Virus record (IMG/VR): IMGVR_UViG_3300045974_000132
Location: 1-64,000 of that record
Direction: 5' to 3' (one strand)
DNA: 64,000 nucleotides
The position numbers and the translations under genes are program-made. This document shows positions 3,001 to 64,000 of the stretch, one piece after another; positions within the stretch are counted from its first letter, which is position 1; each line of letters begins with the position of its first letter. Below the pieces are notes generated by a model, which had not been told where the DNA came from, did not search any database, and saw only the letters and a program-made list of their open reading frames with translations.

Positions 3001-6000
3001 GAGCAGGTATATGATATTAGTGTACCGGGCCCGCACTCCTACGTAGTTAATGGCATATATGGCCATAACACGACCTTAGGTATTGCTGACATTTCAATGA
3101 CGTATGCTGACGGATTGATTAAGCGTCCGTTTATCATCTGCCCTAACGGTCTTGTAGGTAACTGGGCTGAAGATATTCACAAGCACATGGAAGGACGTTG
3201 GAACGTAATCCCAGTAACTACTGAGACTTACGGGGCTTGGGGTGATGAACGCCTTACTGAAATGATTAAGAGTGCTCCTACGAATACAGTAGTTGTCGTA
3301 GGTAATAGCTTCTTAGGCAATCGTGGCAAGTTCCAACTGATCTTAGGTAATGCTGTAGAGAACGTTTCTGATTCACTAGAGTTCTGCAAGAAGTTCCATC
3401 CGGATTATATCTTTATTGATGAATCCCATCGGATGCGCAACCTAGGCTCTGGTATTCATAAGATCGTTAAGTCTATGATGCAGATTAGTAGCGTAAAGTA
3501 TGGTCGTATCGGTACAGGTACTTTCATTCAGAACGTTCTGTCGGATGCTGTCGGTCAAACTGCTCTTTACAATGCTCAAGTCTTCCGTACTAAGGAAGAG
3601 TTTGATGCAAGCAACAAGGCTATGATTTCATCTATCGGTGGAGAAGATGTGTATGACTACACACCTGATGCTCCTGCTAAGGTGAAACGTCGTTTAAGTG
3701 AGTTTGCAACAATCATTTCTTACAAGCGTAAGGAATGGGCGTTCATGCTTCCGCTGCCTGTAGAAACGTTTATCTCTGTATCGTTTGATGATGCAGAAGA
3801 CCCTGAAATGGGTCGTGCCCATCGTATGTTCTACGATGCTGTACTGAAACAAACTATGGAAGAACTGAAGACTGACAAGGTACTTCAGAAACTTCTAAAG
3901 GGTAGCTCAGAAGACGACGAAGATGACGATGCTGATGATACGCCTGAAGGTAGCACTCCTGATAGCAAGGATGGAAAAGATCGCACTGTAACCACTGCTG
4001 AAGGTACTAAGATTGACGTTACTGACGGTGATGATGACAGTGATAATCTTGATAAGCTCGAAGCTGCTTTAAATCCTTACTTGCAACGGCTTGAGCGCAT
4101 CCTAACGGATCCGTTAGGTGATGAAGACTTAGCAGAAGTTGCTAAAGAGTTCTTCGGAGAAGCAACCCGTGATACTTTCGTAACACCTAAAGTCTCTAAG
4201 GTAATCGAACGTATCAAGAAGAACTTTGAAAGCAATGAGTGGCGTAAGGGCATGGATATTAAGTCCTCTGACATTGTTGATTTCAATGGCAAATCTTATA
4301 TCTTCAAGTCTGAAGAGCCCATGGGCAAGACAAAGACCAAGTCTCTTATTGCCCCTGACGAAGATACCGAAAACTGGAAACCTCAGTCTAAGGGTAAGGT
4401 ACTAGTCTTCTGTCGCTTTACTCGATCTGTCGATGCTATCTATCGTGCACTGCCTGCTGATCTGAAGAAGCAAGCTGTTGTATTCCATGGTGAAGTCGAA
4501 GGTAACAAGTGGGAGAATCTCGAAGCGTTCAAGAATGATCCTAAGATCAATATTCTGATCGCAAATGAAATGGGTATCTCTGAAGGGCACAATCTTCAGA
4601 TGGCTTCACGCTTCATTCGTGTTGAATCTCCTTGGGCACCGGGTGAGCTTGACCAGTCTTCATCGCGTATCTTCCGCCCTGACGTATCAGGTAAGTATGA
4701 ACGTCAAACAATCTTCCTTGATTGGATTATTTGTGACGGTACGCTAGAAGTTGCGAAGATGGGCCGACTGATTTCTAAGATGCTGCGGAAAGCACAGTTC
4801 GATGAACTGGACAATCCTAAATATTACAAGAATCTCAATCCTTTGAACTTGCCTGTTATTAAGATGTCCCTTGACAACATCAAGACATTGAACAAGATGG
4901 CCGATCTTTGTGCTATTGCAGGCGTAGGGGATACGAAAGAGCCTAATTCCAGTAGCTACATTGGGCAGTACGGTTATCTAGTAGGTGAAATGGCTGAAGA
5001 GTTTCGTGAAATGAAGAAGACGAAACGTGCTTACATGATTGATGTTAAGCCTACTCCGATGCCTGATGATGCTAAGGTGATTGAGTTCACACCGTGGGTG
5101 CCTAATATGAAGGTGCCTGATCGTCATGATGAAGGTTTGCTATCGCTCAAGGGTGTTCTACAAGAAGAGGATCATCCTCTGACTATTGCATTCAAGAAAG
5201 ATAAGCGTGCCTTAAACGGTCAGTTTGTCCGATGTGAGTTCGGCTTAGGTACTATCATAGGGGTATCAACTTCAAAGAATTCTTCTAGTGACGAGGATGA
5301 AGATCCCGGAGTATCTGTTAGTAAAGTGAAGATCGAACTTTCTCAGGGTGGTAAGGTTGAATCTTTGTCTGCTTCAAAGGTATATCTGGCAACTAAGATT
5401 ACCGAAAAGACAAAGAGCTCCATGAATAAGAAAGCTCCGAAGATCACGAAAGAAGATAAGGAACGCACTTCTGGTAATGCTAAGAAGGCTGAAGTCGCGC
5501 TTACTCGTGCTGCTAAACGTGAGAAGGACTTTGTCAAGAAGGTGGCTGATGTTAAGCGTAAGCCTAAAGCTGTTGAAGAGCCTGAAGACGCTTCAGAAGA
5601 AACGATGGACATTTCGTTGTATCCTGTAATCTACAACGAATTCTTGGCGCTGGAAGCAGTACCGGAAGATGCCACTGTATCTCTGAAGCAATACGGCTTT
5701 ACGAAGTTTGGCAACTATGCTTGGCTACCTGTTAAGACTTATGCCAACTTTACGAAAGTGTTGGAGTATATTGAATCGAAATATACCCTAGCTCCTAAGA
5801 CGATTAAGCTCCTAGATAGCTTGCACGATAGCTTCAATAGTGGTCGAGGTCGTAAGTTTGCTGTTGAGCTTGCACCTACTTCAATGCTTCCGCAGTTCTA
5901 TCGTCTCCGTCACACAATGACTGTGATTAAGGACAAGCGTAAGCCTGATCTGAAACTATACCCTGTCATCTTGAATGGTAGCTTGCTGTTGGTTGTAGAT

Positions 6001-6231
6001 ATTGCAACCAATCCTGTAATTCGTAAGATCCTGAACAAGACTATTGTGGGTACTTCACCTGCAGTCAAGTTCCAAGAAGCTGACGGTCTTGAGATTGAGT
6101 TCTTTGATCGTAAGTCTAGCTTGGTTAATAAGGTCAAGGAACTTCGTCAAGCAGGCTTCAATGTTATCAACATTGAGGAGTTGAAAGAAGAAGTGGGCTC
6201 GCTTAATCTGAAGCAAGTTTCAACCAAGTAA
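4..6231 (+). CDS. SNF2/SWI2-type SF2 helicase-like ATPase precursor containing an intein; probably 5'-truncated because the frame is open to base 1
   Basis: Q-motif QLFPHQ, Walker A DIAPGGGK|T (split by intein), motif II IFIDESH, motif III GTGTFIQN, motif IV KVLVFCRF, motifs V/VI EGHNLQ...SPWAPGELDQSSSRIFR. Confidence 0.9.
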   Translation: MQPTIAFSFALNLPINIVQYIVQAKDKVSLASLNVWASVWASAMMKPPGIKGTGLQTNKIPRYVLMPSASSYLSKKREELGLYSEPGRSNKDGIYITERGNISYLPKQTEAVEENAKAYEKVLEDSLALSYEAGTPLITSQEGSAGSIFDLASPEYKSKIRMTKSQLHGFKGCMQTYNWDLNCIITTSVVSPDRFVSQKLVGCSIPDELNLANYMRTDFMKGMCNMFSDSTIKEGAKRIKPEPKHFADLPSAITDSSLFLNFSQAYNMLEKRKLVPGLKELIDRSMASLKLKSLRDEEVSMFEIDRFDSNKTIYGNFLKPDLGFSLVGDSDANNASLLLPNTGKTILHYLTVVANDARALGRSNLAAYCIKENVDPADTGRFFDSQTHAIHEFENLFKYVGGQIFLQAMKAIVAVSSKDLMTIGEETDPNDKNSFAGFSALQSEVVPFCLMFSKYVTDLKEAIFKKAEEIEDTNKHPKVSEEELNIAGSRAPTANRPGMQLFPHQAECLAILKNHPRFAVLDIAPGGGKCLVGDSLVPTSDGILSLKEVYARSDVSTNKRGFQEYITSVVSHENRVEKTDFAYSTVGITHKVKLSDGTVTQGLPEHKLWAVPLTSNAPEFIRLDNLRKGDWLPKALGTELYPKKTPILSFNGQKHTLTEELAEILGWLVAEGYVVKDRCHFEQHSPEMMARYINKAETLFGTGSVVIRKGTTTSAKFSEKAVFEFVRDLMTLGTSAFKEVPLCIRTAPKKYQQAFLRSLFEGDASIYHGSQGRNQSRIWKFEYCTISKTLVHHVKAMLDNMGILTSLKTGNAYKSNGHDHVKRVYRLFINWRALPKLAQEIGFLSTAKTSLLEEAVSHVEFVSTSAQQTTNTKVGSAENRIPGYELATFVNLRIREVLSTYTYEVPKTKNGAGGRTEPWSIMKVMRDAELGRKSLPASYGNDATNKYSVERLFRIIEGVPKEAKKELLSDYYVAQAIDSLKYFVANTWVQVKSSRKAKEEQVYDISVPGPHSYVVNGIYGHNTTLGIADISMTYADGLIKRPFIICPNGLVGNWAEDIHKHMEGRWNVIPVTTETYGAWGDERLTEMIKSAPTNTVVVVGNSFLGNRGKFQLILGNAVENVSDSLEFCKKFHPDYIFIDESHRMRNLGSGIHKIVKSMMQISSVKYGRIGTGTFIQNVLSDAVGQTALYNAQVFRTKEEFDASNKAMISSIGGEDVYDYTPDAPAKVKRRLSEFATIISYKRKEWAFMLPLPVETFISVSFDDAEDPEMGRAHRMFYDAVLKQTMEELKTDKVLQKLLKGSSEDDEDDDADDTPEGSTPDSKDGKDRTVTTAEGTKIDVTDGDDDSDNLDKLEAALNPYLQRLERILTDPLGDEDLAEVAKEFFGEATRDTFVTPKVSKVIERIKKNFESNEWRKGMDIKSSDIVDFNGKSYIFKSEEPMGKTKTKSLIAPDEDTENWKPQSKGKVLVFCRFTRSVDAIYRALPADLKKQAVVFHGEVEGNKWENLEAFKNDPKINILIANEMGISEGHNLQMASRFIRVESPWAPGELDQSSSRIFRPDVSGKYERQTIFLDWIICDGTLEVAKMGRLISKMLRKAQFDELDNPKYYKNLNPLNLPVIKMSLDNIKTLNKMADLCAIAGVGDTKEPNSSSYIGQYGYLVGEMAEEFREMKKTKRAYMIDVKPTPMPDDAKVIEFTPWVPNMKVPDRHDEGLLSLKGVLQEEDHPLTIAFKKDKRALNGQFVRCEFGLGTIIGVSTSKNSSSDEDEDPGVSVSKVKIELSQGGKVESLSASKVYLATKITEKTKSSMNKKAPKITKEDKERTSGNAKKAEVALTRAAKREKDFVKKVADVKRKPKAVEEPEDASEETMDISLYPVIYNEFLALEAVPEDATVSLKQYGFTKFGNYAWLPVKTYANFTKVLEYIESKYTLAPKTIKLLDSLHDSFNSGRGRKFAVELAPTSMLPQFYRLRHTMTVIKDKRKPDLKLYPVILNGSLLLVVDIATNPVIRKILNKTIVGTSPAVKFQEADGLEIEFFDRKSSLVNKVKELRQAGFNVINIEELKEEVGSLNLKQVSTK
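1591..3069 (+). mobile_element. Intein (493 aa) with LAGLIDADG homing endonuclease, inserted in the helicase P-loop
   Basis: N-terminal block CLVGDSLV, C-terminal VYDISV...YVVNGIYGHN followed by Thr as +1 nucleophile. LAGLIDADG-like LAEILGWLVAEG and FLRSLFEGDA, block H ISKTLVHHVKAMLDNMGI. Removal restores GGGKT. Confidence 0.93.
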
Positions 6232-6240
6232 TGTAGCAAA

Positions 6241-6269
6241 GGCAGAGGGGTAATTCCCTCTGTCTATTT
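6241..6269 (+). terminator. Probable intrinsic terminator hairpin
   Basis: GGCAGAGGG-gtaatt-CCCTCTGTC 9-bp stem followed by TATTT, just after the helicase stop. Confidence 0.6.
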
Positions 6270-6280
6270 AAGGATGCACT

Positions 6281-6532
6281 ATGAAAAAGATTTTAGGTAG
6301 TGACGAAGCAAAGCATCACGTTTGTTGTATGACGGATCGTAAGTGTGTAGGAACGGCCTGTATGGCGTGGATTCAAGAAACTATTAATGTTTCTACTCCC
6401 TCTCCGTCAACCACACTAACTGTTTCTAAGAAAAAGGGATCTTCAGCAAAAGCTGAAACTGTTCCTCTTTCTACAACTGTTCTTCAAGCAACCAATCGCG
6501 GATTCTGCGGTATGGTTTCTCACAAGGAGTAA
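6281..6532 (+). CDS. Small Cys-rich hypothetical protein (possible Zn-binding)
   Basis: 83 aa ORF with AAGGA RBS; HVCC..C..C..C.AW and C-terminal GFCG. Confidence 0.65.
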   Translation: MKKILGSDEAKHHVCCMTDRKCVGTACMAWIQETINVSTPSPSTTLTVSKKKGSSAKAETVPLSTTVLQATNRGFCGMVSHKE

Positions 6533-6537
6533 CTACA

Positions 6538-6885
6538 ATGCAAACAGGTAGCGAACAACTACGTCGTCAACAAGAGATAATGCGGGCCAAGGGCTTTTAC
6601 GGTGGTAAGCTTGATGGTATTTGGGGTCCGGCAACTGTTGATTCAAAGAAGAAGTGGGAAATGAGCGGCACGTTTGCCCCAGGCTTGCCGAATTTCGGTC
6701 TTCCGCTTTCTAACAAGGGCCCATATCCTAAAGGCGTCATTCTTGATAAAGCAACGGGCATGCTTACATGTACCGAGCTAGAACTTCAAAAGCAGAAGGA
6801 CGCGGATGCAGCGGCTGCTCAAGCTAAACAGGCCACTCTGAGTAAAGCTAAGCCCGTTGAAGATAGACCGTCGTCTGAGGAATAA
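6538..6885 (+). CDS. Peptidoglycan-binding (PG_binding_1-like) domain protein
   Basis: QQEIMRAKGFYGGKLDGIWGPAT matches the Q..L...G.Y.G..DG.(F/W)G..T signature; AAGGAG RBS. Confidence 0.7.
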   Translation: MQTGSEQLRRQQEIMRAKGFYGGKLDGIWGPATVDSKKKWEMSGTFAPGLPNFGLPLSNKGPYPKGVILDKATGMLTCTELELQKQKDADAAAAQAKQATLSKAKPVEDRPSSEE

Positions 6886-6944
6886 AAGAAGTAAACTGTA
6901 AAAGTCATACATAATATAGTAATACAATTGAAAGCGACTTTACT

Positions 6945-7562
6945 GTGAATCCTACATCCTTTATAGGTAGACGATTTCATAAACTAACCGTTCTAAAGTT
7001 TGTAGAACGCACTAAAGGGCATGATATTTATGAGTGCGTTTGCAAATGCGGAACAGTAAAAACAACAAGGCTCTCTTCCTTATTAACAGGTAATACGAAG
7101 AGTTGCGGATGTTTAGCAAAGCCGCACGGGCACCTGTCTGACTGCAAGGTATCTCCAGAGCATAGGACTTACCAAAATATGATGACACGCTGCTATAATC
7201 CTAACAGTGACCGCTACAAGGATTACGGTGCTCGTGGAATCACTGTATGCAAAAGACGGCATACCTTTAAAAATTTCTTAGCTGATATGGGACTTAAGCC
7301 CTTTCTTAGGGCTCAGATCGACAGAAAAGATAACGATAAAAATTATACAAAGTCTAACTGTCATTGGACTACCGCTAAAGAAAATAGTAGTAATAGACGC
7401 AATACACAATACGTAACATACAAAGGTGAAAAGAAAACTGTTGCTCAATGGGCTGAACATTTAGGTATTCCAAATAATGTCCTCCACGGACGTATTTGTA
7501 GATACGGGTGGCCCATCGTTCAAGCTTTTACTACACCTGTTGTACCAAGAAAGCGTCGCTAA
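6945..7562 (+). CDS. Free-standing HNH-family homing endonuclease
   Basis: KLTVL..YECVCKCG..TKSCGC N-terminus, RCYNPN...YKDYGARGITVC, IDRKDNDKNYTKSNCHW; GTG start; abuts the polymerase ATG. Confidence 0.85.
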   Translation: MNPTSFIGRRFHKLTVLKFVERTKGHDIYECVCKCGTVKTTRLSSLLTGNTKSCGCLAKPHGHLSDCKVSPEHRTYQNMMTRCYNPNSDRYKDYGARGITVCKRRHTFKNFLADMGLKPFLRAQIDRKDNDKNYTKSNCHWTTAKENSSNRRNTQYVTYKGEKKTVAQWAEHLGIPNNVLHGRICRYGWPIVQAFTTPVVPRKRR

Positions 7563-10500
7563 ATGAAACACACAAATTTTGATTATGACCTTACCCGTTT
7601 CGAGGCCGACGATGAATATTCATATGTGAAGTTGGCCTACGAGAATAACGGCGATAAGAAGGTGTTGTTTGTCCTCGACGTTATGCCTACGGAGGACCTG
7701 CACAGCGGTAAGCTACTCTCCGGGCAAACTGGAGACTTGTTGAACGTTCTCGTTGCAACAACTAGGCGTCTGTACGCAAAGCAGGCGCCTAGTTTTTCTT
7801 GGCTTGCTGTTACATTCAATGCGTTTCGTACCTTTGGTAAACCGTCTGAGTATCGCGCTCAGGCTGAACAAGCTTTCTCTGAACGTGTAAAGTGCCTTAT
7901 CACTAAGTACCAACCTGACTATGTAGTTGCGTTTGGTACTTCTGTTATGCAAGCTTTGTTGGAAGACAAGATTGTAACAGACGGTAAAGGTAAGACACGC
8001 TTCAGTTATTGGCTAGGTGTTCCTGTTAAGAAGGACATCAAGTATAAGAAGAAAGTACATACCACAACTATTGTTTCCACATTAAGCCTCAATGACATTG
8101 TACGCGGTGATGACGCGGAAGTGAGCTTGCTTGGCTATATGTGCCGCAACTTGTCTGCTGTATATGGGCGACACTATTGTGTTGACGTAGATCGCTTGCA
8201 CAACCATAAGACAATTATGGTCAATACGGTTGCAAAGTTTGACAAGCTTATGGCTGTACTACGTGAGAAGCCCTATGTCTCATGGGATACGGAAGCCAAG
8301 AATCTGCATAAGGTTACGAACAGACTTCTTACTGTCCAAGCTGCTTTTGATATAGATAAAGGGTATTTGATACCTATATATCACAAAGACACACCCTTCA
8401 CACCTGATGAACTCAATTACATTGTTGAGACATTGCAGGATTACTTTGAAGGTAATAATAACAATGATTACCACATCTATGTTAATGCAAAATTTGACTT
8501 AACGTTGATGCGGGCAGAGTGCGGTATCCGTTACTTTGCAAATGATGTATGGGACATTCTTGCAGGCGAGTTCATGCTTGACGAGAACCTTAAGTCTTTG
8601 ATGACAGTGCTTGGCGAGTATTACTATTCCTTGGGTAACTTGTCAGTGCAATACGGTTTCGATGGGTATATCACTGCTGAGTTTAGTAAGCAGCATAGAG
8701 CCAACTTTGAAGCAACAGACCTAAGTGATCCCGCTGTTCAACATTATTGCACCCTCGATGTGGTGGTCCCACTTTCGATCCATTTGCAACAGAAAGAACG
8801 TGCTAAGTATATCAAGTACGCCAAGTATGAACAGGTAGTACGTAATGAGGCTAGTGATACGATCCATGCTTTCTCTAAGATGGAATATACAGGTGCCGGT
8901 CTTGACGTACCTTACTTGTTCTATTTGAAGACTGTTGACTCTCCGATTGAGTTGGAGATTAAGAAGATGGCTGGAGCCCTTCTTAAAACAGATGCTGTTA
9001 AGAAGACCAACTTGCTCTTGTGCAAAGCACAAGGTATGCCTACAGGCAGCTTATTTACAGGCGTTGAAACAGTAGCAGCTTTCAAGCTTAACAAGCCTGA
9101 CCATAAGAAGAAACTATTCTTTGAAGTGCTTGGCTTAGAGCCGCTTGAGAAGGGTGCAGGCGGCGTAGGTAAGCTTGATAAAGGATTCCAGAAAGCGTAT
9201 GCTCACATACCGGAGGTAGCACAATACACTGCACTTGAGAAGGCAAAGAAACTCAAGAATGCGTATGTTAAGAGCTTCATCAACATGCTGGGTTCGAGCG
9301 AAGACCTTCAGAAGGATCATCGCATTCGTCCAAACTATGGCTATCTAGGCGTTGTAACACATCGCGGGTCAGCAAGCGATCCTAACTTGCAACAAGTCCC
9401 AGCACACTCTGCTTTGGGTAAACATATCAAGCGGTTGTTTGTTGCGCGTGAAGGTACTCTATATATCAAGGTCGACTATCGGGTACATGAAGTACGCGGT
9501 TGGGGTCTTATATCGTTTGACAAAGCGGTTGCTGCTGTATTTGCCGCAGCTAAGAAATTGCGTGATGAATATCGTTTGCATCCAACAGCGGAACTTGCGA
9601 AACGTTTGAAGACAGAAGCTGACGTTCACATTCAGAATGCCTCCTACTTCTTCAATGTCGCAATGGAGAAGGTTGATAAGCCTCTTCGTAATGCTGTTAA
9701 GGGTATCATCTTCGGTCTGATCTACGGCATGGGTATGAAGACGCTTGCTAAGAACATCGGGCAGACTGATGACTTCACTAAGACCCTTGTAGATAACTTT
9801 GCCAAACGCTTCCCTAAAGCTATGGCTTGGACGAAAAACGTCAAGAAGTTTGCAGCGGAGAATCTATTCGTAGAAGCACCGACTGGTATTAGACGTAATC
9901 TATTTGGTTATCTACTACCTAGTAGCTTTGAGAGCGCAGGCCAAATGGCCGCTCGTATGGATCGTCAAGCAGGTAATGCTCCGATTCAAGGTATGTGTTC
10001 TAAGTTCATGATGAATGGCATTCGTATTCTTGATTGGCTGATCTTTAAGGAAATCAAGAAGAACAAGAATTTCATGCTATTCATTACCAACTCAGTGCAT
10101 GACTCGCTAGAAAACGAAGCAGGCTATGCAAACTTCCTGAAGTCTCTTGCTATGATTGAATGGGCATTGACAGACGGAGTTAAGAATAAGGTCAAGAAAC
10201 GTTATGGCTTCGACCTAGTAAGCAATCTTGAAATCGACTTTGAAATTGGGGCAACTCTTTCTCAATGTGAAGGCTGGGACTTCAGTATTGCACAGCTTGA
10301 AACACTCGTAATGGATAGCTTGATCTTCCAACGTAATAAGCTTCAGCGCAATATTGTTCCTGACCGCATCATGAAGGTGATCTTCTCTGATCGTGCTGTT
10401 ACTGAAGATGCTCCGGAATGGATGCAGAAACAGATTAGCAACTTGAACTATTCCTTCGAGTTGACAGAGCGCAGTTACATCAAGCGCATGTTAGACGAGG

Positions 10501-57378: not shown

Positions 57379-59172
57379 TTACTTCCAGTAAGAGACACGA
57401 ATCTTGTCAGTGCCGCTTAGAACATACAGCATAGTGATAGCAGTACCGGAGATCGTGTAGTCATTACCTGCGCCAGCATCTTGCAGTTGGCCGTTAACAA
57501 ATACCATTTCAGTACCGACAACTGGTGTATTAGCCAGTGTGTAAGTAACGTTGACACCATCAACTGTACCAGCAGGGGTTTCACTACGAACGAAACGAGT
57601 AGTACGAAGAACGTTTGCATTCAAAGTAACAGCACCCGTGTTGTCCATAGTTGCATCACCTGATAGGGTATGTGCAACAACATTGGAAGCGCCTTGGCCG
57701 ATCAGAATTGCACCAGTTGCTTGTTGCTTGGTGACAGTTTCGTCAATAGCATTCAGAGCAAGCTTGGCAGTAGTAACTGAAGCACCGGCTAGCTTTGCAG
57801 TAGTTACAGCATTGTTGGCAATAGTGATAACGCCAGCGGCTGTAATAGTTGCATCACCCGACAGAGCAACTGCTAGTGAGTTAGTACCTGCACCTTGACC
57901 AACGATCAAAGTACCAGCAGCTTGTTGAGCCATCTTGCTAAGGTCTACAGCATTAGCTGCAAGCTTACCAGTAGTGATAGCCAGAGCAGCAATAGTAAGA
58001 GCACCTGTAGCAGCAAGAGTTGCATCGCCTGACAGAGCTTGAGCAACAACATTGGAAGCGCCTTGACCAACCAGCAGAGAACCCGAAGCGATCTGAGCAA
58101 GCTTGGTTACATCAACTGAGTTATTTGCAAGCTTGGCCGTAGATACGGCACCTGCTGCAATAGTCAGAGCGCCCGTAGCTGCTAGAGTTGCATCACCCGA
58201 AATTGCTTGAGCGATAACATTGGTACCCGAACCTTGACCGACGAATACAGTACCTGCAGCGGTCTGCTTAAGGATTGTTTCATCCACAGCGTTCAGGGCA
58301 AGCTTGGCAGTAGTAACCGACAGAGCAGCCAACTTAGCAGTAGTGATTGCCAGTGCAGCAATAGTCAGAGCACCTGCGTTGGTGATAGTAGCATCGCCCG
58401 ACAGAGCAACACCCGTTGCAACATTTGTACCGTTGCCTACTAAGATGTTACCAGAAGTCAGAGCAGCCAACTTCAGACCAGTACTACCGACAGACAGTGT
58501 GCTGTCTGCAAGTGTCAGGGCAATTTGACCAGCAGTGCTTGAAATACCACCGTTAGCTGATATAACATTGAACTGACTACCGGTAAGCGTTAAGCCGTTA
58601 CCTGCTGAGTAAGTGCCTGAACCGCTAAACTGTGCGAAGGCTAGTGACGTAGTACCCAGAACGATCGGATTAGCCGTAGCCAACACCCAACCGCTAGTTG
58701 CATTTATCGTACCTTGTTCAACGAAAGTATGCAGACCAGCAGTGACTTCACCAGTAATGCTATTATCAGCATCAGAAGAACGTGCCCAAGCACCGGCAGC
58801 TACAATGTAGATACCGTTTTGGGTTGCAGTAGTTTGGTTCTTGACCAGAACACGATCACCGGCGATAACAGCTATACCGTCAATAGTCTGGGTACCAGTA
58901 AGGGCGATGTTTGCAGTAGTAGCAACACGAACAGATGCTTTTACATCCAAGCCGACTGCGATAGAATCAACGTAGTTCTTGGTTGCAAGATGTGCAGGGA
59001 GTGTCGGATCAATACCGGCAACAACTGCGGTGAAAGGAACGCTACCGTCATTCTTAACTAGCGAAGTACCGCCAGCAATCTTTGACAGAGCGATATTAGC
59101 TCCAGCTGCAACTAGCGCATCGGAAATGATGCCTGGTGAGAGTTGCTTGGCTGTAAATTGACTTTGCGACAT
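57379..59172 (-). CDS. Fibre/decoration protein with SGDAT repeats
   Basis: ATKNYVD..GLDVKASVRVATTANI.L.G.QTIDG..V..GDRVLVKNQ..NGIY head; five SGDAT..GALTI..TTAKLA-type repeats; C-terminal VFVNG..DYT module. Confidence 0.85.
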   Translation of the reverse strand: MSQSQFTAKQLSPGIISDALVAAGANIALSKIAGGTSLVKNDGSVPFTAVVAGIDPTLPAHLATKNYVDSIAVGLDVKASVRVATTANIALTGTQTIDGIAVIAGDRVLVKNQTTATQNGIYIVAAGAWARSSDADNSITGEVTAGLHTFVEQGTINATSGWVLATANPIVLGTTSLAFAQFSGSGTYSAGNGLTLTGSQFNVISANGGISSTAGQIALTLADSTLSVGSTGLKLAALTSGNILVGNGTNVATGVALSGDATITNAGALTIAALAITTAKLAALSVTTAKLALNAVDETILKQTAAGTVFVGQGSGTNVIAQAISGDATLAATGALTIAAGAVSTAKLANNSVDVTKLAQIASGSLLVGQGASNVVAQALSGDATLAATGALTIAALAITTGKLAANAVDLSKMAQQAAGTLIVGQGAGTNSLAVALSGDATITAAGVITIANNAVTTAKLAGASVTTAKLALNAIDETVTKQQATGAILIGQGASNVVAHTLSGDATMDNTGAVTLNANVLRTTRFVRSETPAGTVDGVNVTYTLANTPVVGTEMVFVNGQLQDAGAGNDYTISGTAITMLYVLSGTDKIRVSYWK

Positions 59173-62942: not shown

Positions 62943-63094
62943 AGTTATCTCAACTCACATGCACATCGTTCTGCAACGGTTTACCTTGAAGTGTCGAGAC
63001 AGTATTCGACCATAGCACCCAAGGAAGCGTTACATAGTATTTCATTGCTTCACAAGCTCTACGAAAAGGAAGCATCCTGTAGTATTCTTTAGTT

Positions 63095-63103
63095 ATTATA
63101 CCA
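63095..63103 (-). promoter_or_regulatory. Extended -10 promoter candidate (TGnTATAAT)
   Basis: Minus strand reads TGGTATAAT just after the 63105 stop; no -35 match. Confidence 0.45.
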
Positions 63104-63104
63104 G

Positions 63105-63998
63105 TCATGATGCTTCACTCCTTGGGTAGTATTTATCGAATAGCGCATCTAGGAATTGCTTAGGCGTAAATTTATTAGTACGCATAATACCTATAAGCTT
63201 GTCTAGCATTTCACGTTCTTTTGATATGTCACCCGCTTTAGCACCCTTTGCATTATGCAGGTCTGCACTAAAGCCATGAACAGCATCTGCATACCTTAGA
63301 CGCTGAAAAGCATCGTAGGCTTTACCGCCTAAAGCTCTTGCTGCCATGTAAGGGTCTTGCCCGGGCTTTATCTTAGCAAACCAAAGTTCCAACCAAGGGC
63401 GAATTGAATTCTGCCTATTACGATACTTGAAATCGTACTCACTATTAAGTCTGTTAGCTGGGGCAAAAGCCGACTTATCAAACTTAACAGGGACTGCTTT
63501 AGCTTTATTCAACAGCATTAGTTCTTTGGTATCTTCATAAAACCAAATCTTTACACCGTGAAGTAATGCTGCCTTCTTTAAGGAAAACATTAAGTGTGTT
63601 CTTTCGTTCACATGGCAATGTATTTCCTTTATATACTTAAAAGCAGGTATCACAGGCTTGCGTGAGAATACGCGATCTTCTGATTCATACCTATCACGAC
63701 GAAGATGATACGCATCATCGGTATTGTAAGGAGCCGCATTTGCTTTATCAAGAGTTGCCCAGTAGTCTACCGGAGCAATCTTATATGACTGGCCAAGCTT
63801 ATACCCATCTAAAACAAATATAACACTTGATGACCAAACATGTTGTCTTGTATAGCTACCTACCTTAGTGCGTGTTGTACTAAGGTAGTAAGCTCCTTTA
63901 CCTAATGCTTCCTCTGCTGAAGTACCTTCACTAGGCTTTAGATAAAACTTATCCTGCGTAACGATTTGAGCAGCTGGACTTAAGGTAGTCAGATGGTA
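63105..63998 (-). CDS. 5'-truncated ORF with ADP-ribosyltransferase-like motifs; runs off the window
   Basis: Manual translation shows the frame is open from 63998: YHLTTLSPAAQIV...YYLSTTR...VIFVLDG...RYESEDRVFSRKPVIPAFKY, joining the 63653 ORF. Confidence 0.6.
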   Translation of the reverse strand, partial: YHLTTLSPAAQIVTQDKFYLKPSEGTSAEEALGKGAYYLSTTRTKVGSYTRQHVWSSSVIFVLDGYKLGQSYKIAPVDYWATLDKANAAPYNTDDAYHLRRDRYESEDRVFSRKPVIPAFKYIKEIHCHVNERTHLMFSLKKAALLHGVKIWFYEDTKELMLLNKAKAVPVKFDKSAFAPANRLNSEYDFKYRNRQNSIRPWLELWFAKIKPGQDPYMAARALGGKAYDAFQRLRYADAVHGFSADLHNAKGAKAGDISKEREMLDKLIGIMRTNKFTPKQFLDALFDKYYPRSEAS

Positions 63999-64000
63999 TA

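Follow-up and report, generated by a model that had tools for sequence, protein, structure and literature searches.

The window analysed here, a DNA stretch of 64,000 nucleotides (positions 1 to 64,000 of the IMG/VR virus record IMGVR_UViG_3300045974_000132), ends within a minus-strand gene whose 310-residue product, P0001, is predicted to carry an ADP-ribosyltransferase (ART) domain. We propose, at a probability of roughly 0.6, that this gene encodes an active NAD+-dependent mono-ADP-ribosyltransferase, which would serve as a virion-associated or otherwise host-acting effector in takeover or counter-defence. That the protein is an active NAD+-using enzyme appears very probable from the modelled ART fold and its intact, constrained active site. 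Delivery with the virion we rate as an even chance, on the basis of four indirect lines, namely the gene's position in a late structural block, the linkage and fusion of the family to wall-degrading enzymes, its membership in the polyvalent-protein repertoire and the detection of a homologue in virions.

The source record is 286,393 bp long, with direct terminal repeats and 43.7% GC, and the window covers its first 64 kb. The listing of open reading frames (ORFs) gives the gene in two forms, a 297-residue minus-strand frame at 63105..63998 with no 5' closure within the window and, in the same frame, a 182-residue ORF starting at GTG 63653. An earlier reading of the letters and the ORF listing (hereafter the sequence-only reading) had noted that the frame stays open for 115 codons beyond this GTG, to the window edge, and had suggested looking for the true start in the adjacent sequence; the ORF listing bears out the former, and the full genome supplies the latter. 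There the frame runs 13 codons past the window to ATG 64037, giving a coding sequence of 63105-64037 and 310 residues. This start is supported by the alignment, since the homologues begin at the same position, with N-termini of the form ME[VIL]L[VI]S[IL]S. In the full protein GTG 63653 encodes V129, an internal residue, and a start there therefore cuts off 128 residues, including the catalytic motifs of the ART domain. The standard genetic code suffices for the reading, the GC content of the gene is ordinary and does not deviate from its surroundings, and promoter and terminator signals around the gene do not rise above shuffled expectation.

By its AlphaFold2 model, built with an alignment (predicted local distance difference test, pLDDT, 84.1; predicted template-modelling score 0.76), the region of residues 1-182 is an ART fold. 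The model has strands at 12-18, 50-55, 71-77, 86-90, 120-125 and 136-142, with helices following strands, an arrangement that corresponds to the ART pattern as described previously (PMC9503650). When the model was compared with the PDB by Foldseek, as the sequence-only reading had suggested, ART structures ranked first: DarT at the top (7omv, E-value 1.4e-4), then other DarT structures, Tpt1, KptA, pertussis toxin S1 and EcPltA. The outcome that the reading had named as refuting, a predicted structure without the ART fold, thus did not occur. VIA-align, which is independent of Foldseek and covered 48,161 chains, concurs. It aligns the NAD lobe of S. cerevisiae Tpt1 with a Z score of 11.4 (root-mean-square deviation 2.5 Å, 111 residues), DarT structures with 9.3, 8.9, 8.5 and 8.2, mouse Tpt1 with 7.7 and KptA with 7.2, and it returns some 25 further ARTs, among them TreX, SopF, EcPltA, TreTu, Scabin, pertussis toxin, CteC, LT, PARP16, pierisin and NarE. 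A shape search of the ESM Atlas and language-model look-alikes brought up DarT, PARP, OspC, Arr and the giant-virus DUF5846/DUF5863 clusters, and the Atlas and BFVD results agree with an ART fold. As a separate observation, bacterial DUF2971 (PF11185) clusters in the ESM Atlas, some fused to SLFN/AlbA_2, resemble the ART domain (template-modelling score 0.63 by query), and DUF2971 may be an unrecognised ART-like family.

The sequence-only reading had singled out YHLT (14-17), YLSTTR (51-56) and YESEDR (117-122) as an ART-like triad, and all three are found at these places and in the order of the fold. Strand 12-18 carries H15, strand 50-55 carries Y50-Y51-L-S53, and strand 120-125 opens with E120. 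Judged by predicted secondary structure and conservation, H15, S53 and E120 would thus occupy the canonical triad places of an ART. Among 28 aligned homologues, H15, T17, S53, R56, E118, E120, D121 and R122 are invariant. Across 170 diverse modules, reaching down to ~25% identity, conservation is 100% for H15, S53, E118, E120 and R122, and 94-99% for R56 (99%), Y62, G78, D91, Y92, W93, D121, H140 and Y167. Y50 is Tyr or Phe in 167 of the 170; position 51 is less than 80% conserved over the whole set and an invariant Tyr in the 14 closest homologues. The "S-T-T motif" of the sequence-only reading holds at its ends, where S53 and R56 are fixed as S-x-x-R, but the two Thr between them are not truly conserved. 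On these alignments the three motifs are the invariant core of the family and no chance matches. The label "H-S-E variant" describes the site fairly in the literal sense, and the aromatic pair before the Ser adds an H-Y-E look; the family reads as a hybrid, its His recalling the H-Y-E clade and its E-x-E and Ser-bearing strand the R-S-E clade.

These conservation data also bear on the idea that the protein is a catalytically dead ART fold that merely helps to build the tail or serves it as an adaptor; the position of the gene between tail-fibre genes could be cited in its favour. We consider this highly unlikely, because the positions that in ARTs bind NAD+ and carry out catalysis are 100% invariant in the 170 members and stay so down to ~25% identity, which a pseudo-enzyme would not be expected to show; many homologues, moreover, lie outside structural modules.

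The family is large and lacks a name in the family databases. A word-index search found 27 relatives, all unnamed except for their fusion partners, and an exhaustive profile search with a limit of E <= 1e-3 recovered 2,689 clusters, each counted by a representative at the 50%-identity level (~2,700 in round figures); 1,019 of them reach E <= 1e-30. Among the best 150 matches almost every one spans profile positions ~6-303, so that the two domains form a module of constant layout, ~290 residues long, of which the present genome holds a single copy. Neither the full-length protein nor either of its halves gave a family when scanned against Pfam, NCBIfam, PHROGs and PADLOC, the Pfam ART-family models did not match the protein or its N-domain at E <= 10, and profile and single-sequence searches of PDB sequences returned nothing meaningful. 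In the absence of a database name, members are annotated "hypothetical protein" everywhere. One candidate was rejected: a Vibrio homologue alone matched ~200 staphylococcal nuclease mutants at E ~0.01, which we attribute to chance because the family profile gives nothing of the kind and the fold differs. Relatives were found neither in plasmids by tblastn nor in cellular genomes scanned with narrow patterns, and a scan of viral contigs with narrow patterns gave 2 loci only. As far as these sequence searches reach, the family is essentially phage-borne.

Comparison with named ART systems places the domain closest to Tpt1/KptA and DarT. Tpt1/KptA (PF01885; 7yw4, 7yw2, 9ld3) is the best structural match and shares the "LYH-T" of strand 1 (LYHGT in E. 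coli KptA); VHLS of KptA falls opposite the YYLS of this family, in a non-significant hhalign alignment only. The N-terminal RNA-binding lobe of Tpt1 is absent from P0001, as its ART strand 1 starts at residue 12. Furthermore, Tpt1 represents the H-H-h clade, named by its active-site profile (PMC9503650), whereas the present family has an invariant E-x-E. The PF01885 hidden Markov model has no match in the protein or in the genome.

DarT (PF14487; 7omv, 7yk3, 8baq, 7omu) resembles P0001 in its compact ART fold and provides the top Foldseek match, with VIA-align Z scores of 8.2-9.3. Its active site has a His in strand 1 and an Arg that touches the NAD+ phosphate; the "Y" position is Tyr in DarT2 and Ser in DarT1, and catalysis relies on a Glu (PMC11543638). 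Judging from the model, the equivalents in P0001, in the same order, would be H15, R56, Y51/S53 and E120. The two differ in several respects. The Arg follows the Ser in this family (S-x-x-R), whereas it precedes the Y/S position in DarT; E-x-E-D-R stands in place of a single Glu; and an extra helical C-domain is present. In addition, DarT is a bacterial toxin of a toxin-antitoxin system with a DarG/NADAR partner, while this family is phage-borne. PF14487 matches neither the protein nor its N-domain at E <= 10, nor anything in the genome.

The closeness of the DarT fold would suit a role as a toxin, similar to DarT, in a toxin-antitoxin or superinfection-exclusion module whose antitoxin would be encoded by either of two small neighbouring ORFs, of 52 and 62 residues. 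The ATGA overlap between the 52-residue ORF and the ART stop codon, and a Zeta-toxin-like kinase next to the distant homologue P0027, could be taken in the same sense. Such a module is very improbable here. The whole 286-kb genome holds no DarT, Tpt1, Macro, NADAR or NadV/NAPRTase, and the plasmid and cellular searches described above were empty for this phage-borne family. The small ORFs are absent from L006, the closest contig with usable context, and differ in Lu11 and L004; because they are not conserved in L006, they are probably no genes, or at least no partners of the ART.

The sequence-only reading had brought in T4 Alt/ModA/ModB as examples of phage ARTs, of R-S-E type. The kinship as a phage ART stands, but the nearest relatives are on the DarT/Tpt1/PARP side and not among R-S-E enzymes. 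The T4 proteins (Alt/VIP2, R-S-E) have in common with this family a Ser-containing second motif and a third motif of E-x-E type, whereas strand 1 carries an Arg there and an invariant His here. T4 Alt/Mod structures are absent from the 50 best VIA-align matches, and the R-S-E toxins pertussis, LT and Scabin appear at Z 4-6.

PARP (PF00644) and Tox-ART-HYD1 (PF15633) are the sole named families matched repeatedly among 67 members, in three and four of them respectively; the best E-values are 0.0018 and 0.008, and all fall below the curated thresholds. Neither the regulatory nor the helical subdomain of PARP is present in this family, and PARPs score poorly in VIA-align (Z ~4). By eye, HLT, GKGAYYLS, Y62 and SEDRVF can be set beside HGS, GKGIYFAD, Y907 and NEYIVY (E988) of PARP1. 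The corresponding family pattern, H-x-T / G-K-G-x-Y-[YF] / Y62 / E-[YD]-x-V, presumably resembles the PARP1 series HGS / GKGIYF / Y907 / E988, and we take both likenesses as a lead only.

A further phage-borne comparison is ART-PolyVal, or "N4-like" (PF18760, Tox-ART-HYD2 clade), which like this family occurs alone, in tandem, in giant proteins and typically next to GNAT; for both, the prediction is that they act on the host soon after delivery. The active site of ART-PolyVal is H-Y-D, in contrast to H / Y-x-S-x-x-R / E-x-E-D-R here, and it has no obligatory helical C-domain. The PF18760 model does not match the module, whose strand 5 opens with an invariant Glu and not with Asp.

The architecture of the longer members argues for delivery into the host. 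They fuse the module to GNAT (many cases), Pol-beta nucleotidyltransferase, LysM + SLT, ASCH or amidoligase domains, and further to NUDIX + ParB_N (with a weak GH19), a putative metallopeptidase and DUF5661. Some proteins carry two or three tandem modules or two ART domains (P0031, P0041, P0138); in P0031 an ART-PolyVal domain (971-1128) comes right after the module (664-958), as a separate domain. P0001 is the solo version. Polyvalent proteins are predicted to be packaged in the virion and injected, and their typical ART belongs to the H-Y-D family, usually beside GNAT (Iyer et al. 2017, PMC5512222). Going by these domain architectures, the module is part of the polyvalent-protein repertoire, occurring solo, in multiple copies and within large multi-enzyme phage proteins. 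Neighbourhoods of two long fusion proteins contained nothing informative.

The position of the gene in its own genome points in the same direction. Every gene from ~53 kb to ~95 kb lies on the minus strand, and the ART gene sits inside a baseplate and tail-fibre block, as the sequence-only reading had put it when it placed the gene beside structural genes; together with the fusions and the virion finding below, this gives its idea of an injected effector indirect support. Upstream lie a baseplate hub/lysozyme gene, a baseplate wedge gene, tail-fibre genes and a weak GT2-like gene; downstream come the 52-residue ORF, a 404-residue Lys-rich protein and four tail-fibre-like genes. T4 Alt, for comparison, is made late, its gene is tied to baseplate genes as are those of the Alt family generally, and its product is packaged and injected (PMC5512222). 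A membrane protein and a lysin-like protein are encoded shortly upstream, a pair that may represent a lysis cassette or, alternatively, a wall hydrolase associated with the virion; the 102-residue and 62-residue ORFs lie between the lysin-like gene and the ART gene. In L006, which carries the closest homologue with usable context (P0008, 57% identity), membrane protein, lysin-like, ART and Lys-rich genes follow a tail-fibre gene in this order. Linkage to a peptidoglycan hydrolase is thus seen in our genome, in L006 and in the distant members P0020 and P0027, both of which adjoin GH19 hydrolases; the Zeta-toxin-like kinase is the upstream neighbour of P0027. The phage itself is distantly related (~30% identity, baseplate wedge) to the jumbo myoviruses PaBG, NCTB and Lu11 (PMC7412058).

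An experimental hint at a place in the particle comes from the KVP40-like vibriophage 6E35.1a. Mass spectrometry of its purified particles picked up the homologue VP6E351A_0174 (QZI87311.1, 197 residues, "No_PHROG", "hypothetical protein"), with counts of 12 and 17 in two replicates and a listed abundance of 14.5 (PMC12028318 Tables S4/S8; ISME J 2025). A distant homologue at 33% identity, it retains all catalytic motifs, as IVYHGTS, YYLSTAR and ELEDRVFS.

Several observations weigh against the proposed effector. Named ART families give no significant sequence match, and an hhalign comparison of the family with E. coli KptA yields a probability of 0.3%, which is not significant. The virion-detected vibriophage protein has no C-domain. 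The same list of 6E35.1a virion proteins includes SSB, helicase and dUTPase at lower counts (PMC12028318), and carry-over of the ART homologue is therefore possible. Finally, gene context differs among relatives: in Lu11, P0009, P0010 and P0015 the ART gene stands among replication genes, and this context of several close homologues partly contradicts an effector role.

These replication contexts would suit an intracellular, Tpt1/KptA- or DarT-like processor of nucleic acids on phage or host DNA/RNA ends or bases, whose partner would be topoisomerase IB, NAD-dependent ligase or RNA ligase and which is not injected, for example by removing or capping terminal phosphates in RNA/DNA repair, or by marking DNA. 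The Tpt1 NAD lobe is the best structural match, and topoisomerase IB lies within about three genes of the four close homologues just named, all of the same subfamily as P0008, at one or two genes in three of them and in both orders (contigs L017, L004, Lu11 and L014). In L004 and L017 the ART gene and topoisomerase IB are part of one series of genes that overlap by 4 nt. Near the ART gene, L014 and L017 also encode an NAD-dependent DNA ligase (LigA), and L004 a DNA polymerase and an SNF2 helicase. In 6E35.1a the homologue, which consists of the ART domain only, is directly downstream of rnlB (RNA ligase; L011 1734-3549), an adjacency that may point to a connection with RNA repair in KVP40-like phages. 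We nevertheless regard this alternative as unlikely. P0001 has no Tpt1 RNA lobe and no PF01885 or PF14487 match, and an invariant E-x-E is typical for nucleophiles other than a 2'-phosphate. In the present genome, topoisomerase IB and two Acb1-like (anti-CBASS) genes, which flank the ART gene in related phages, are found at ~99.8 kb, ~102.3-102.9 kb and ~113.1 kb (L018-L020), as a set ~36-49 kb from the ART gene; topoisomerase IB itself is ~38 kb away, so that its linkage to the ART is not obligatory, and the ART gene lies among tail genes. Polyvalent fusions and the detection of a homologue in virions favour delivery. P0001 is probably a weapon of the phage against its host.

In Pseudomonas phage Lu11 (L003) three paralogues of the module occur within ~4 kb, at 4917-5831, 6001-6948 and 8145-9026 (Lu11_0200, 0202 and 0206). 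All are annotated as hypothetical; Lu11_0200 reads F-H-G-T and S-V-R-R at its first two motifs, so that the motifs drift but H, S..R and E-x-E-D-R are kept.

Two further regions of the protein may determine what is modified. The loop between W93 and E118 varies from 6 to 34 residues across the family, with 24 in P0001. Its column entropy of 3.4 bits is the highest in the domain, compared with 1.2-1.9 for the catalytic strands, and AlphaFold2 confidence is lowest in this segment. In the model, its position matches that of the substrate-recognition ARTT loop of other ARTs. Residues 183-310 form a separate all-helical domain, which folded alone reaches a pLDDT of 94.5. Its conserved positions are H261-N262-A-K and K302-[WY]; over the 170 modules N262 is 97% and K302 95% conserved, and position 303 is 92% Trp (Tyr in P0001). 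A fold search with this domain alone gave a best Z of 4.1, and Foldseek returned nothing below E = 1. Almost every one of the best 150 matches joins the C-domain to the ART domain; the KVP40-like vibriophage homologue consists of the ART domain, and an Alishewanella tblastn match covers the N-terminal part only.

With respect to the target, we lean slightly towards nucleic acid, dividing the likelihood among nucleic acid, protein and NADase/small molecule at about ~45 : 40 : ~15. The lean follows from the fold neighbours DarT and Tpt1, the linkages to topoisomerase IB, ligase and RNA ligase, and the ASCH, ParB and nucleotidyltransferase fusions. A protein target is arguable because Alt sets a precedent, GNAT domains are among the fusion partners and the active site has its E-x-E and Ser; E-x-E together with an S-T-like strand is classic for protein-arginine ARTs, which counts against the lean and makes a protein nearly as likely a target as nucleic acid.

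The small-molecule share corresponds to an NADase, an NAD+ phosphorylase or an Arr-like enzyme that would modify or destroy a small molecule, such as an immune signal, in counter-defence and would leave macromolecules unmodified. Acb1 genes within ~3 kb of the ART gene in L014 and L017 fit this picture, as do Arr among the language-model look-alikes and the GNAT, nucleotidyltransferase and NUDIX partners, which are typical of small-molecule modification; that certain phage ARTs could act as NADases has been noted (Iyer et al. 2022, PMC9503650). It is nonetheless improbable as an account of P0001. The hypervariable ARTT-like loop and the obligatory extra domain suggest a diversifying macromolecular target, the nearest folds modify macromolecules, and the genome is without the NadV/NAPRTase salvage that could offset NAD loss.

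Under the effector reading that we favour, the gene would be co-transcribed with the co-oriented baseplate, tail-fibre and lysin-like genes, and its product would associate with the virion and be delivered at infection, or act on the host in some other way. H15 in strand 1 and Y50/Y51-L-S53-x-x-R56 in the next main strand would hold NAD+, and E120 would stabilise the oxocarbenium intermediate and activate the acceptor. Selection of the target, a host macromolecule whose ADP-ribosylation would serve takeover or counter-defence, would fall to the hypervariable loop 94-117 together with the C-domain 183-310.

A more specific version, in which the family, with its H / S-x-x-R / E-x-E-D-R signature and a new helical domain for specificity, is a new clade of nucleic-acid-modifying ARTs that jumbo phages package and inject to ADP-ribosylate host or own DNA/RNA, is possible but rather doubtful. 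If true, it would be the phage-side counterpart of the bacterial defence toxin DarT; the loop before E-x-E would be tuned to different targets, and tandem paralogues, such as the three in Lu11, would widen the range.

ADP-ribosylation is used on both the phage and the bacterial side, as in T4 Alt/Mod, DarT, AcrIF11-type anti-CRISPRs and CmdT. ARTs have been reported in >40% of jumbo phages, and packaging in the head has been proposed (Iyer et al. 2021, 2022; PMC9503650). What appears to be new is this family, for which Pfam, NCBIfam, PHROGs and PADLOC have no model, although it may already be named in a published ART classification. Its distinctive features, as they appear from the alignments, are the set H / S-x-x-R / E-x-E-D-R, its very large size and the obligatory helical domain, which matches no known fold. 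Since members are carried by cultured phages (Lu11, Dickeya JA phages, KVP40-like vibriophages and SCTP-2), the family is directly testable. Identifying the target would add an effector class to phage takeover and counter-defence and explain a recurrent polyvalent domain, and it might yield a new nucleic-acid- or protein-modifying enzyme.

Table 1. Features of the ART gene and of its surroundings. Positions are genome coordinates, which coincide with those of the window up to 64,000; positions within the loci L007 and L001 are given in brackets.
Feature	Position	Strand	Basis or remark
In-window part of the 310-residue coding sequence	63105..64000	-	ATG 37 nt past window end; genome reading, homologue N-termini
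Predicted ART-fold domain, residues 1-182 (14-182 in window)	63492..64000	-	Model and fold searches
Strand 1 motif L-Y-H-L-T, residues 13-17	63987..64000	-	First base of L13 codon at 64001; H15 (63993-63995) invariant
Y-Y-L-S-T-T-R, residues 50-56	63870..63890	-	Aromatic pair; S53 invariant, R56 99%
Hypervariable loop before E-x-E, residues 94-117	63687..63758	-	Column entropy, low model confidence
E-S-E-D-R, residues 118-122	63672..63686	-	E118, E120, R122 invariant; E120 opens fifth main strand
GTG taken as start in the ORF listing (V129)	63651..63653	-	ORF listing, coordinate check
All-alpha C-terminal domain, residues 183-310	63108..63491	-	Conservation and separate folding
52-residue ORF overlapping ART stop codon by ATGA	62950..63108	-	Absent from L006
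404-residue Lys-rich protein, C-terminal hydrophobic segment	61728..62942	-	Neighbour kept in L006 (364 residues there)
62-residue ORF, ends 5 nt before ART start	64043-64231	-	ORF listing
250-residue signal-peptide protein (lysin-like)	64590-65342 (L001 3091-3843)	-	Matches "endolysin" PHROG
114-residue membrane protein	65297-65641 (L007 1297-1641)	-	Precedes lysin-like gene
Weak GT2-like 310-residue ORF between tail-fibre genes	65762-66694 (L007 1762-2694)	-	Sub-threshold GT2 glycosyltransferase, E 1.6e-4
Tail-fibre protein	66711-67181	-
Tail-fibre protein	67194-67742	-
Tail-fibre protein	70851-75806	-
Baseplate wedge	76510-78234	-
Baseplate hub/lysozyme	79486-81015	-

The 404-residue Lys-rich protein has no family match. 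Further downstream, a 597-residue tail-fibre-like protein (57379-59172, minus strand), which matches tail-fibre, head-decoration and virion-structural PHROGs, contains about five tandem repeats of ~55 residues with the pattern "...LSGDATL.A.GALTIAA.A.TT.KLA...".

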